From Macrostomum lignano (taxonomy: Eukaryota): a stretch of DNA of 29,143 nucleotides. The notes under the pieces were generated by a model, which saw only the letters and a list, made by a program, of their open reading frames with translations, had not been told where the DNA came from and did no database searches. The stretch is taken from positions 1-29,143 of the forward strand of contig NIVC01002318.1 of the NCBI GenBank assembly GCA_002269645.1, read 5' to 3'. Made by a program: the position numbers and the translations under genes. Below, one piece after another: positions 8,200-19,513 of the stretch (the first letter of the stretch is position 1; each line of letters opens with the position of its first letter).

Positions 8200-8685
8200 A
8201 TGCGCTTCGCCCTGCTGGCCCTCGCCCTCGCCTTCGCTCTACTGGCGGCGACGGTGCGCGCTGACTATGCCAACTTCGAAAACGCCGACGACGATTCCAT
8301 TGAAGACCAGGCCGAGTCCTTCGACGATGTCGATGAGGCCGATGAGGCCGACGATGCTGACGAAGCGGACCAGGATGTCGAAGATGAGGAGAAGGAAGAG
8401 TGCTCGCCGGAGCCGAAGACCGAGACCAAGACCCTGGGCGGCAAGGAGATCCGCCAGGAGACTGAGAACATCTCCGTCCGAGGCCGCTGCATCCGCGTGC
8501 TGAAGGGCGGCAGCCCGGACGACTACACCACCGCTGGCAGCTGCTCGCGTTGCAGGTCCCGCGGCTCGGGCTACTACTGCCTTCCTTCGCCTCTGGCCAG
8601 AAGCCTGAAGTGCGAGATGGTGCTGGGCCCCGACTGCCGGCGGCACAAGGTGGACAAGTCCGACCCCACCAAGCCTTGCGAGTGA
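8200..8685 (+). CDS. Secreted acidic/cysteine-rich protein, paralog 1 (161 aa: signal peptide 21 aa, acidic tract 46 aa, 8-Cys domain 94 aa)
   Basis: Intact intronless ORF with GC3-rich codons and agccATG context. Hydrophobic signal ends in VRA. Cys spacing C-x28-C-x17-C-x2-C-x8-C-x10-C-x7-C-x13-C. Two paralogs in the window. Confidence 0.93.
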   Translation: MRFALLALALAFALLAATVRADYANFENADDDSIEDQAESFDDVDEADEADDADEADQDVEDEEKEECSPEPKTETKTLGGKEIRQETENISVRGRCIRVLKGGSPDDYTTAGSCSRCRSRGSGYYCLPSPLARSLKCEMVLGPDCRRHKVDKSDPTKPCE

Positions 8686-8796
8686 ATGAAGAAAAGTTTT
8701 AACAAGCCAAATTAATCATTGGACTATTCCTATATTTATTGTGTTTTTACTCTATTTGTAACGATAAGAGTTTTAAAATGCCTGCTAATTACTCCT

Positions 8797-8802
8797 AATA
8801 AA
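8797..8802 (+). terminator. Putative polyadenylation signal (AATAAA) of paralog 1
   Basis: AATAAA 112 bp after the stop; retained in the paralog 3 flank (19728-19733). Confidence 0.6.
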
Positions 8803-9036
8803 CGTGTTCACCTGTAGTAGGTTGTGAAAGGTAGCTATAGTCCTATGCACACTGCAACTACTAATCATTGTTTTTGTGAGTAGTACAGCGTTCAGGTGTT
8901 TTGAGCCGTTTCTCTGTTGAAGATATACGGCTAAATATTTCCTAGATTTCCAATTTAGCAACGAATGTTGATAACGAAAAGAACATAAGGAAATTTAAGC
9001 TAATGTATTCGAATAACAATGTTATCGAAAGCTTAA

Positions 9037-9448
9037 GTACCTGGTCTTCAGGTATAGCTAATGTACCTGGTCAGGTATAGCTAATGTACCTAGTCAGGTA
9101 CAGCTAATGTACCTGGTCAGTTATAGCTAATGTACTTGGTCAGTTATAGCTAATGTACCTGGTCAGTTATAGCTAATGTACCTGGTCAGTTATAGCTAAT
9201 GTACCTGGTCAGTTATAGCTAATGTACCTGGTCAGTTATAGCTAATGTACCTGGTCAGTTATAGCTAATGTACCTGGTCAGTTATAGCTAATGTACCTGG
9301 TCAGTTATAGCTAATGTACCTGGTCAGTTATAGCTAATGTACCTGGTCAGTTATAGCTAATGTGCCTGGTCAGTTATAGCTAATGTACCTGGTCAGTTAT
9401 AGCTAATGTGCCTGGTCAGGTATAGCTAATGTACCTGGTCAGGTATAG
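9037..9448. repeat. 23-bp minisatellite (CCTGGTCAGTTATAGCTAATGTA)n, ~18 units
   Basis: Direct tandem units; homologous shorter array at 19976-20107. Confidence 0.97.
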
Positions 9449-9869
9449 AAGCAAAGCCGTTAGAAGCAACGCAGAATTCATGTTAGTCATAGAACAGTTT
9501 ACTAAGGGATTGTAATGAAATTCGTACTGCATTTGCAACTTGCCTACTGCAATCCGCACCACTAATACTAGACAAGAACGAACATGTTAAATGCATTGCT
9601 ATTATACGTGTAAAGACACAACCGCATCCTTGAAGATAGTTTGCTGACTTTATATAGCAGAAACAAAAATTACAAAGGTTTCAAAGAACATGACAGCAGC
9701 ATGTGAGCAGACTAATAGAGCGCATCTCTGGGCTAGGGTGCGAACACAGGCCGTTCACAATGCACAAGTCTCCTATAGGGAACCATGGACATTGGACAAC
9801 TGAAGCAGAAGGGCACTGCATCGATTTTCATAGAAACGAGCTGGATGCCAATAAAGAAATTATGTAAAT

Positions 9870-10270
9870 TTCGACGTCCTCATTGATAGCGATGGCAGCG
9901 TGGTCCGGCTCATTGCGTGGGGCAGATGACACCCGCGTCGACTACCCAACCTGCACCGCTTGCTGGTTCGCAGCTACGGCGGCACCAGCCTCGTCAGCGC
10001 CGCTACCATCGACGACTTTCTCGGCAGATCGTCGTCGTCACTTTCGCGGCACAGTCGGGCGAGCGGACGCAGATGCGACGTCTCGTTCGGGTGCGGCTGC
10101 GTCGCCGTCGAGTAGAAGCATCGCTTGGTCGAATTGGGCGGCTCAGTCAGTCGGAGGTGATGGCTGCAGCAACTGTCCAGCCTGTTCACACGCCGCGACC
10201 AGATCTTCGTCGGTCACTTCGTCGGCCCAATCTCTGATGTCGCAGTCCGGCTCGACGAGGATTGTTAGAA
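9870..10270 (-). pseudogene. Degenerate coding fragment of unknown origin (possibly transposon-derived)
   Basis: GC-rich island. One minus frame reads LTILVEPDCDIRDWADEVTDEDLVAACEQAGQLLQPSPPTD*AAQFDQAMLLLDGDAAAPERDV...EDVEIY with three in-frame stops and no frame change. Confidence 0.35.
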
Positions 10271-16971: not shown

Positions 16972-16975
16972 GTTG
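16556..16975. repeat. (GTT)n / (AAC)n microsatellite, degenerate on the left and nearly pure on the right
   Basis: Direct inspection; explains the poly-Thr ORF 16326-17006. Confidence 0.97.
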
Positions 16976-18254
16976 ATTCTGCGGCCGTAAACGTCATAGA
17001 GGCCATTTACATGCGTTATTATAAAATGCTAGTACTCAAACTTTGATTAAATATTTTCTTGAATTCCATCGAGGCCCAGTTAACTAGATCACGAACTCTG
17101 ACTGAGAACAGCGCCAGCAGCGTTTAGTAGCAAAACAGCGACTGCTCGGTCTTCTCTCCTTCTATATATAAAAATCTCTATATTCTCCATAATAAAAATT
17201 CTTCTCTATTCATTTAAGTCTGCATCCATAGTGCACTGCAGAATGAAGCAGAACTCAATGATGTAAAATTGAATAGGCTCTTAGGCTTACAGACAGCTAC
17301 AGAATGCGACCCCTGGCCCAGCAGCCCTGCAATTATTTAACCATGGCTGGACGACTATTAAAAATCTTAGAACTTCAAAAGTAGATGCGTTTTTACAAGT
17401 TACTGCAAGCATTATGATTTTTAGAATAGACAGCCGCAGCAGATTTCCTATGCAAGAGTCTCTCCTAAAGGCTAGTTACTTGTGAGTATTCACGCATTAA
17501 TAAAGCGTTCATTTTTTGAGAAATAGTTTCGCTTCTTTATGGTTGTTATATTGACCTATAAATATAATGACCAATGGATCATTAGTTGTCACTTCATCAT
17601 CATGCTGCGTTTGTTTAAATTATTATTACTATAATAATAGTAAATATAGTAATAATATTGATATTATTATTATTATTATTATTATTATTGTTGTTGTGTT
17701 GATTGTTATGAATCATTTATGATATTATTGTGTTACTTTGAACTAATGAACACCTAATTAATAATAAAAATAAATACAAAAAGCCAGTAAAATATTTTTC
17801 ACGCAAAACAGATTATTTAAACCTATTTATGAAGCCAACATGAATTAAGCCTCATGCGTGTAGCTTATATCATGGTTTTTATAAATTTTTCTATAATTTC
17901 ATTTTTTGTATCTCTCTTTGTGAAATAATATCAAATCAAATTGACAATTTAAAATCGAATGTATTTAAAACACTGTTGGTGCAATTCAACTTTGCTATAA
18001 TTTAAATTGAATATTATATTGGAGTTTATTATACTTTAGAAAGAAAAGCTCAGCGATAACGGGTCCGTGTTCAATTCCGCAAAATCAATAATTCGGGCTT
18101 GTCCCGTGATTACTGCCTATACAAGGGCCAACCCTAAGGCATGGAGAGTGTACATGTACATGCATGTTTGATAAGAAAGCTGGGGGCGCTGTACACCCTG
18201 CGTTATTGTGTGCCCGCGTGTGATCACCGGATGCCTTTGAGTGCCCAAAGCTCA

Positions 18255-18550
18255 ATAGCTAGTCTAGTGGTTAGAGCATCGGACTGGAAAGTCGGGGGTT
18301 CGATTCTCGACCCACTCGGAACAATTTTTGTCTTTGAGCAAGACATTTACATGTAGCTCTGTGCATTGCTTCAGTTCACCCAGCTGTAAAATGGGTGCCA
18401 GCATTAGCTGGGGTAATTCAGGGTGTGTGTGTGGCGACCCCCCAGTCCCGGAGGCAGCCTTCATGTGTTTTGGCTGAGCTGTCGGTTGCATATCTGGTCA
18501 TTAGGGCAGGTGTAATCAATTACTATTATTAATAATTATTGAATTATTAC
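18255..18550 (+). mobile_element. tRNA-derived SINE with a CORE-like central domain and (TTA)-like tail
   Basis: A-box TAGTCTAGTGG (~18260) and B-box GGTTCGATTCT (~18297). TTGAGCAAG...CTCTGTGC...TCAGTT...CTGTAAAATGGG (18334-18395) resembles the MIR/CORE consensus as recalled. AT-rich TATTATTAATAATTATT tail. Confidence 0.72.
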
Positions 18551-18911
18551 TCGTAGCATCCAGCAGCTATGCCTAGCAGGCAGTTGTTTACAAGTTTTCC
18601 AGCGCAGACAGGACCGATGAAGGGTAAAGTTTCCATTATTTTCATTCAAATGGCAACTGTTTATGACGGCTAAAAGCTATGAAGCAGTCCGCCTGTGCCG
18701 CGCCGCGCTCTCTGAGTCAAACAGAAATAGAAGCGCTGCTGTAACCATTCTGCCTCTAAGCCATTCGAGACACACAATGGACAAATTGTTTGTGCAGAAT
18801 ATTGTATAATCGAAAAACATCTCTTACCCCGTGCAGGCTGTGTGAGAGCCGCTCATCATATGGGACCACCTGCGGCACGAGTCTGCAGCGCCCAAGACGC
18901 TTGTCCACCGA

Positions 18912-18964
18912 CACGTGCGGCAATTCACCTCCTCTGCACGGGCTGCTATCGCACCTCTATATAT
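18912..18964 (+). promoter_or_regulatory. Proximal promoter of paralog 3: CACGTG (18912-18917) and TATATAT (18958-18964)
   Basis: TATA-like box 88 bp upstream of ATG 19046; the 11-mer ACACGTGCGGC is shared with paralog 1. Confidence 0.65.
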
Positions 18965-19045
18965 GCTAGCGCTGCAGAAAGGCCCCGGCCAAGCAAAGGC
19001 AGTTGCCTCTTCAGTTGCACAATCAACAGCCCAGCACAACCAGCC

Positions 19046-19513
19046 ATGCGCTTCGCCCTGCTCTCTCTCGCCCTCGCCTTCGCCCTACTGGCGGCGACGG
19101 TGCGCGCTGACTATGCCAACTTTGAAAACGCCGACGACGATTCCATCGAAGACGGGACCGAGTTCTTAGACAATGTCGATGAGGCCGATGAGGCCGACGA
19201 AGCTGATGAAGATGAGGAGAAGGAAGAGTGCTCACCGGAGCCGAAGACCGAGACCAAGACCCTGGGCGGCAAGGAGATCCGCCAGGAGACCGAGAACATC
19301 TCCGTCCGTGGCCGCTGCATCCGCGTGCTGAAGGGCGGCAGCCCGGACGACTACACCACCGCTGGCAGCTGCTCGCGTTGCAGGTCCCGCGGCTCGGGCT
19401 ACTACTGCCTTCCTTCGCCTCTGGCCAGAAGCCTGAAGTGCGAGATGGTGCTGGGCCCCGACTGCCGGCGGCACAAGGTGGACAAGTCCGACCCCACCAA
19501 GCCTTGCGAGTGA
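19046..19513 (+). CDS. Secreted acidic/cysteine-rich protein, paralog 3 (155 aa; 40-aa acidic tract)
   Basis: True start is ATG 19046 (agccATG, homologous to paralogs 1 and 2). The Cys domain is identical in amino acids to paralog 1, with three synonymous differences. Confidence 0.93.
   Translation: MRFALLSLALAFALLAATVRADYANFENADDDSIEDGTEFLDNVDEADEADEADEDEEKEECSPEPKTETKTLGGKEIRQETENISVRGRCIRVLKGGSPDDYTTAGSCSRCRSRGSGYYCLPSPLARSLKCEMVLGPDCRRHKVDKSDPTKPCE

Follow-up and report, generated by a model that had tools for sequence, protein, structure and literature searches.

The whole contig NIVC01002318.1 of the Macrostomum lignano assembly Mlig_3_7 (GCA_002269645.1), 29,143 nucleotides long and called the window below, contains three tandem genes of an uncharacterized secreted protein family. 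Each gene (copies 1 to 3) encodes an N-terminus that resembles a signal peptide, a polyacidic tract and a 94-amino-acid (aa) domain with eight cysteines. The family is real, lineage-restricted and of moderate interest; the three genes themselves are already deposited as hypothetical proteins. Our favored explanation, to which we assign a probability of about 0.55, is that these are paralogs of a secreted family so far known only from Macrostomum, in which a cationic module would be stored in granules, masked by the tethered polyanion, and would bind an anionic partner.

Protein architecture

The three genes are uninterrupted, single-exon coding sequences on the forward strand. Copy 1 (8200..8685, 161 aa) is composed of a signal peptide (8200-8262), an acidic tract (8263-8400), an eight-cysteine domain (8401-8682) and a stop codon (8683-8685). 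The corresponding parts of copy 2 (14920..15432, 170 aa) are found at 14920-14982, 14983-15147 and 15148-15429. Copy 3 (19046..19513), which has 155 aa when counted from the conserved MRFALL start, has them at 19046-19108, 19109-19228 and 19229-19510. In all three copies the N-terminus starts with M-R, continues with a 15-residue hydrophobic core and the TVRA motif, and is followed by D or E. By inspection it is signal-peptide-like, and the proteins look secreted.

The acidic tracts of copies 1, 2 and 3 have 46, 55 and 40 residues, 53-57% of which are D or E, and net charges of -25, -28 and -21, respectively. The differences in length fall within DEA-type codon repeats, and the tract length drifts through insertions and deletions in these repeats. 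The domain that follows has the cysteine pattern C-x28-C-x17-C-x2-C-x8-C-x10-C-x7-C-x13-C-E and a net charge of +6 in copies 1 and 3 and +5 in copy 2. The calculated isoelectric points (pI) are 4.05 for the tracts, 8.9-9.0 for the cysteine domains and 4.1-4.3 for the mature proteins of approximately 15-16 kDa. No dibasic or RxxR (furin) site was found before the first cysteine at the inspected tract-domain junctions (EEKEEC and EEKAGC).

An earlier sequence-only reading of this region had proposed the same intronless three-part architecture, cysteine spacing, basic domain charge of about +5 to +6 and lack of a dibasic site after the tract. Each of these points was reproduced here from the open reading frames (ORFs), the alignment of the three copies and recomputed charges, the signal peptide again by inspection.

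Family members and taxonomic distribution

Only two protein clusters, both of M. lignano hypothetical proteins, were matched by the cysteine domain in a collection of 5.8 billion sequences. An exhaustive hmmsearch of 1.84 billion representatives with a four-domain profile returned three proteins, all from M. lignano; extension of the profile with the tract-less subfamily described below yielded no additional relatives in the same set. The lineage specificity suggested in the sequence-only reading was thus borne out among these representatives, and within the reach of the databases the family appears to be restricted to M. lignano. The genome of this species commonly contains orphan secreted families.

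A tblastn search found no further copy of the family in the window. Copies 1 and 2 are 98% and 97% identical to BOX15_Mlig017599g2 and BOX15_Mlig025292g3, respectively. Contig NIVC01003232.1 (L001) is collinear with the window at 94-98% identity and contains the same three genes, and contig NIVC01004454.1 (L007) contains copies 2 and 3. The assembly is neopolyploid and known to be redundant (PMC5730564), and the repetition of the gene array on other contigs fits this redundancy. Three further single-copy loci, Mlig016941 g1-g3, code for a variant of the protein.

The most distant relative, Mlig017461/Mlig032188 (139 aa, 41% identity, E=8e-12), has a signal peptide with the cysteine domain directly after it and a short proline-rich tail; it contains no acidic tract, and its cationic domain has a pI of 9.3. 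From this sister subfamily it follows that the cysteine domain is the autonomous, ancestral module and the polyacidic tract an accessory on its N-terminal side. All eight cysteines and the motifs T-x-T-x2-LGGK-x-I-x-Q, GPDC and V-D-x2-D-x-T-K-x-C are conserved across the subfamilies, whereas the N-I-S sequon and the exact C-terminus vary. The sequon and the VDKSDPTKPCE end, previously described as invariant, are so among the three copies of the window but not family-wide: the relatives have NIF in place of the sequon, and VDKADPTKPCE, VDRSDHTKAC-stop or VDPTDKTKACD... in place of the C-terminal end.

Evidence for functional genes and transcription

The genes are real and more than chance ORFs. 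This follows from the recurrence of the array on two other contigs, from the ratio of nonsynonymous to synonymous divergence (dN/dS, or omega) of 0.44 outside the variable loop (p=0.006), and from the GC content at third codon positions (GC3), which is 0.80-0.83 in the three genes; the GC content of 1-kb segments across the window ranges from 0.29 to 0.61. The gene models of the assembly were built from RNA-seq and transcript assemblies (PMC5730564), which implies that members of the family are transcribed. Look-ups of the exact proteins gave matches only in NCBI genome contigs and none in transcript assemblies. Gene identifiers and accessions were not found in the searchable literature or in the parts covered of the supplements (PMC5816591, PMC7336406, PMC5730564, PMC10786194, PMC12896417, PMC5977470); this is a weak negative, given partial coverage of the tables and the possibility that Mlig_37v3 identifiers do not match BOX15_Mlig tags.

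Variation of the C3-C6 segment

The segment between the third and the sixth cysteine is found at 8542..8613 in copy 1, 15289..15360 in copy 2 and 19370..19441 in copy 3, all on the forward strand, and its amino acids are identical in copies 1 and 3. Copy 2 differs from copies 1 and 3 at 12 of the 20 non-cysteine positions of this segment, against 14 of 66 elsewhere in the domain (Fisher p=0.0018). The recount therefore agrees with the concentration of differences that had been noted before.

Selection was assessed by the Nei-Gojobori method, and significance by Fisher tests. For copies 1 and 2, omega is 0.48 for the whole gene. In the C3-C6 loop (dS 0.81, dN 0.49) it is 0.60 and not different from 1 (p=0.40), and in the rest of the gene it has the value given above. 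Comparison of copy 1 with Mlig016941g3 gave dS of 0.05 in the first 92 codons, and dS of 0.43-0.52, dN of 0.29-0.41 and omega of 0.57-0.96 from C3 onward. Loop values from 0.60 (copies 1 and 2) to 0.96 (copy 1 and Mlig016941) are indistinguishable from 1 and never clearly above it, so that the diversifying recognition loop of the sequence-only reading did not find support in this check. By these estimates, the C3-C6 segment, where constraint is relaxed, evolves at an approximately neutral rate, whereas purifying selection acts on the remainder of the protein; the loop may possibly be under diversifying selection.

Synonymous divergence is also raised in the variable blocks (dS 0.43-0.81, compared with 0.05-0.18 nearby; heterogeneity p=5e-5), so that part of the loop pattern is a mosaic produced by gene conversion or recombination between paralogs. 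Between copy 1 and Mlig016941g3, identity is 95-100% over about 950 nt of upstream DNA and the first 115 codons, except for one window with an insertion or deletion; it falls to approximately 70% over the last 120 nt, and the homology stops at the stop codon. By position in copy 1, the identity to the Mlig016941 locus is 92% in 8495-8554 and approximately 70% in 8555-8674. Copies 1 and 3 have the opposite pattern, with near-identical 3' halves (dS 0.02, compared with 0.155 in the 5' half; p=0.03) and a common 3' flank, in which 8732..9160 (forward strand) is 94% identical to 19663-20108 and leads into a 23-bp minisatellite. Homogenization has thus affected the 5' half between copy 1 and the Mlig016941 loci, and the 3' half between copies 1 and 3. 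With its growth by tandem duplication and polyploidy and its reshuffling by gene conversion, the family is a clean case of a secreted family with a restricted taxonomic range.

Comparison with known families and predicted structure

A Pfam search (hmmscan, E<=10) with the full proteins and the isolated domains gave only sub-threshold matches of a compositional or chance nature. These include Trypan_PARP (PF05887), a compositional match of the acidic tract with 14.8 bits against a gathering cut-off of 100, and DUF3716. Sequence searches of PDB with a single domain and with the profile gave nothing at E<=10.

An AlphaFold2 model made from four close sequences had a predicted local distance difference test score (pLDDT) of 51.8, and the list of Foldseek matches obtained with it was meaningless and discarded. 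With an eight-row alignment that included the tract-less subfamily, the best model reached a pLDDT of 86.9 and a predicted template modeling score (pTM) of 0.70; the other four models had pLDDT of 74, 71, 69 and 51. The best model is all-beta, with eight beta-strands arranged as successive hairpins. The hypervariable C4-C5 stretch forms the hairpin 50-54/57-61, and the C3-C6 segment is composed of this hairpin and the following loop; the C5-C6 loop is the lowest-confidence part of the model. A recognition surface could be marked by the variable hairpin.

No match at E<=0.001 was obtained in a Foldseek search of the best model against PDB and the viral models of BFVD. In PDB the best E-value was 0.36, with a TMq of 0.16, and the highest TMq among the matches listed was 0.28. 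The model resembles cystine-knot cytokines (Spaetzle/NGF) in being an elongated, all-beta, disulfide-bonded secreted module of about 100 aa. As a candidate relative, however, this group was rejected: Spaetzle (3e07_A) ranked 19th with a TM score of 0.17 and E of 3.3, which is noise, and the CxGxC/CxC signature of Spaetzle/NGF/CTCK is absent.

The earlier view that the domain belongs to no recognized family is therefore upheld for Pfam, PDB sequences, a profile-profile comparison with five VWC domains and Foldseek against PDB and BFVD; none of Pfam, PDB and BFVD contained a confident match to a characterized family with the same cysteine spacing. The fold is possibly new. If the model is right, the domain is a compact disulfide-rich beta domain without a relative in Pfam, PDB or viral models, it would add a structural family, and it is a useful target for structure determination.

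Possible function

The favored explanation can be outlined as follows. The protein would enter the secretory pathway, where four disulfides would lock the cationic beta module. In the granules of gland cells the tethered polyanion (net charge -21 to -28, compared with +5 to +6 of the domain) could neutralize the module or condense it with divalent cations. The acidic tract may either stay on as a polyanionic tail or be cut off at a site that is not dibasic. Once released, the protein could use its exposed cationic domain to bind an extracellular anionic partner via the variable hairpin. The likeliest setting would be secretion from a gland or an epithelium, with a role in defense or in the matrix, rather than an already mapped prostate product. 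RNA interference (RNAi), in situ hybridization (ISH) and transgenesis exist in M. lignano, so the function of the family is directly testable.

Several points weigh against this explanation or its parts. The storage, charge-masking and binding steps were deduced from composition only, and the signal peptide was called by eye. Transcription is implied for the family and not per copy, since the RNA-seq mapping used for annotation permitted multi-mapping. Lineage restriction is limited by the size of the library, so large that relatives of a 94-aa domain with identities below about 30% would not reach the E-value cut-off, and by the collections searched, which were without other Macrostomum species. 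The structural model comes from an alignment of eight sequences, about five of them distinct, with one of five models above a pLDDT of 80, and the lack of a structural relative covers PDB and BFVD only.

Among the alternatives, a cationic antimicrobial or defense peptide precursor, whose anionic propiece would be cleaved, survives best, but we consider it rather unlikely. Cationic cysteine-rich host-defense prepropeptides have a signal peptide, an anionic propiece and a cationic disulfide domain, the layout of defensin-type precursors. The family has the same order of signal, anionic tract and cationic disulfide-rich domain with opposite charges, and the sister subfamily consists of the cationic domain alone. 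At the same time, the family differs from defensin-type precursors in that no dibasic or furin processing site precedes C1, the 94-aa domain is much larger than is usual for such peptides and is predicted to be all-beta with four disulfides, and the charge of the tract far exceeds that of the domain. No similarity to a known antimicrobial family was found in Pfam or by Foldseek in PDB.

The proteins could instead be seminal-fluid (prostate) or other reproductive secretions that are passed at mating and evolve fast under sexual conflict. We regard this as improbable, although the family is small, secreted, orphan and tandemly duplicated and has a fast-evolving surface segment. The prostate products of M. 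lignano are mostly proteins of a similar general kind, many of them without a BLAST hit (PMC5977470); the Mlig-pro1-76 set (Weber et al. 2018, PMC5977470) resembles the family in coming from the same species and in being composed of small, mostly secreted proteins with many orphans. The loop, however, does not have dN/dS above 1, and the primers used for ISH point elsewhere. Parts 2-4 of the five parts of Table S11 in PMC7336406 contain 178 primer pairs, which represent all of Mlig-pro1-76 except pro9 and pro17, as well as further probes for prostate, ovary and gonad and some for testis. With at most three mismatches allowed, none of the 178 pairs mapped to the window or to any of six related loci (L001-L006). 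In this part of the table the family is therefore not among the ISH-verified prostate, ovary or gonad transcripts, and no primer of an Mlig-pro transcript maps to it, pro9 and pro17 being outside the primer set. The primer evidence is not decisive, because the screen covered only 150 candidates. For the ovary/egg transcript RNA815_2054.7, one primer matches L003:16580 and L004:16285 with three mismatches, approximately 6 kb 3' of the tract-less paralog; this is likely a chance match, because only one primer of the pair matches.

It is very unlikely that the proteins are divergent members of the VWC/SVWC group, which are extracellular binders of BMP-type ligands. This relationship was tested because UniRef names the homeolog of copy 2 a 'VWFC domain-containing protein', an automatic label. 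VWC (PF00093) and the single-domain, eight-cysteine SVWC (PF15430) share with the family an extracellular location, abundant disulfides, beta-hairpins, also seen in the model, and a C-x2-C motif with a glycine-containing hairpin after it; the C-x2-C ... G ... C stretch of the family aligns locally with the C2xxC3 part of VWC. Neither VWC nor SVWC was listed by hmmscan at E<=10, SVWC having been checked with four domains of the family. In the profile comparison by hhalign, for which five real VWC domains were recovered from PDB alignments (COL2A1, chordin and three from NELL2), the probability was 0.3% over 16 columns around C-x2-C. The VWC motif needs ten cysteines with C2xxC3xC4 and C8C9xxC10, whereas the family has eight, with CSRCRS or CATCTS and no CC pair, so that both the CxxCxC and the CCxxC signatures are absent; it also has an additional N-terminal C1-C2 segment of 30 residues. 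The sole VWC-containing chain among the Foldseek matches listed was NEL (9oz8_B), at rank 38 with E of 5.7 and a TM score of 0.27, not above noise.

Still less weight is given to a component of the duo-gland adhesive system, such as a polyanionic factor that would bring about release by displacing the Lys/Arg-rich Mlig-ap1. The release factor of M. lignano was predicted to be secreted and negatively charged and has not been identified (PMC6410801), and the mature proteins of the family are strongly anionic overall. The releasing vesicles, however, are reported to have a low protein density and contain polysaccharide positive for periodic acid-Schiff staining, the factor was predicted to be a small molecule (PMC6410801), and the sister subfamily lacks the tract. 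We could further speculate, with equally little expectation, that the eight-cysteine module is a new fold whose polyanionic members act as a proteinaceous releasing factor that out-competes the substrate or glycocalyx for Mlig-ap1, with the tract-less cationic sisters as antagonist or partner. The strongly anionic members are in any case candidates that could be tested cheaply as the anionic release factor of temporary adhesion.

Finally, the chance that the genes are non-functional ORFs or annotation artifacts is negligible. It is favored by the many micro- and minisatellites of the region and by the long antisense ORFs that overlap the genes. Against it, the ORFs are intact in all copies on several contigs, subfamilies with 41% identity keep all eight cysteines, dN/dS outside the loop is less than 1, the genes have a high GC3, conservation extends to the TATA-like and poly(A)-like signals, and the gene models are transcript-based.

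Transcription signals and surroundings of the genes

All three genes are compact and intronless, and each has a TATA-like box and a poly(A)-like signal of its own. The TATA-like boxes, all on the forward strand, are TATAAAT at 8089..8095 (copy 1, 111 nt upstream of ATG), TATAAAT at 14825..14831 (copy 2, 95 nt upstream of ATG) and TATATAT at 18958..18964 (copy 3, 88 nt upstream of the conserved ATG). In the alignment of upstream regions, GC(A)GCTCAAGC comes after the aligned TATA-like element in the copies. The AATAAA hexamer is found on the same strand at 8797..8802, approximately 110 nt past the stop codon of copy 1, at 15428, where it overlaps the stop codon of copy 2, and at 19728..19733, 3' of copy 3.

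The mechanical ORF of copy 3 reaches upstream to 18842. The public protein model of this gene has 217 aa, with 62 codons added upstream, and a partial model of 262 aa exists on the sister contig. The upstream in-frame ATG of the public model (18860-19045) would bury the signal peptide. The public start was probably mis-called, because it lies 5' of the TATA-like box and has no conserved counterpart in copies 1 and 2.

Antisense ORFs of 134-135 aa at 8239-8646 and 14914-15318 (reverse strand) lie opposite the sequence that codes for the acidic tract and the cysteine domain; the strong GC3 bias of the sense genes most likely gave rise to them as a by-product. An (ATCT)n microsatellite of 295 units, 97% pure, occupies 6530-7708, about 500 nt 5' of copy 1, and yields long spurious 'LSIY' ORFs. 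At the Mlig016941 locus L002, the stretch between this microsatellite and copy 1 is conserved to 95-100%. Minisatellites that flank or separate the genes are located at 5232-5848, 9048-9448, 13865-14078, 20570-21456 and 22215-22464, with periods of 26, 23, 17, 32 and 19 bp, respectively; the 23-bp array, which varies in copy number among contigs, comes after the 3' flank that copies 1 and 3 have in common.

Between copies 1 and 2, approximately 2.7 kb (10281-13057) are missing from the collinear contig NIVC01003232.1. They contain a 270-aa ORF (12206-13018) without a Pfam match and a 62-bp tandem repeat in five copies (11062-11373), and may represent a mobile-element insertion. A tRNA-Cys (GCA) gene at 21604-21676 on the reverse strand (Rfam, 70.6 bits; ARAGORN) is found about 2.1 kb downstream of copy 3, probably by coincidence. 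The GC-rich region 26773-29092 (approximately 61%; forward strand) has long ORFs for a low-complexity protein rich in Ser, Asp, Glu and Pro, without a Pfam domain; by its position relative to copy 3 it matches the start of a 1171-aa gene model on NIVC01004454.1 (L007 13315, forward strand).

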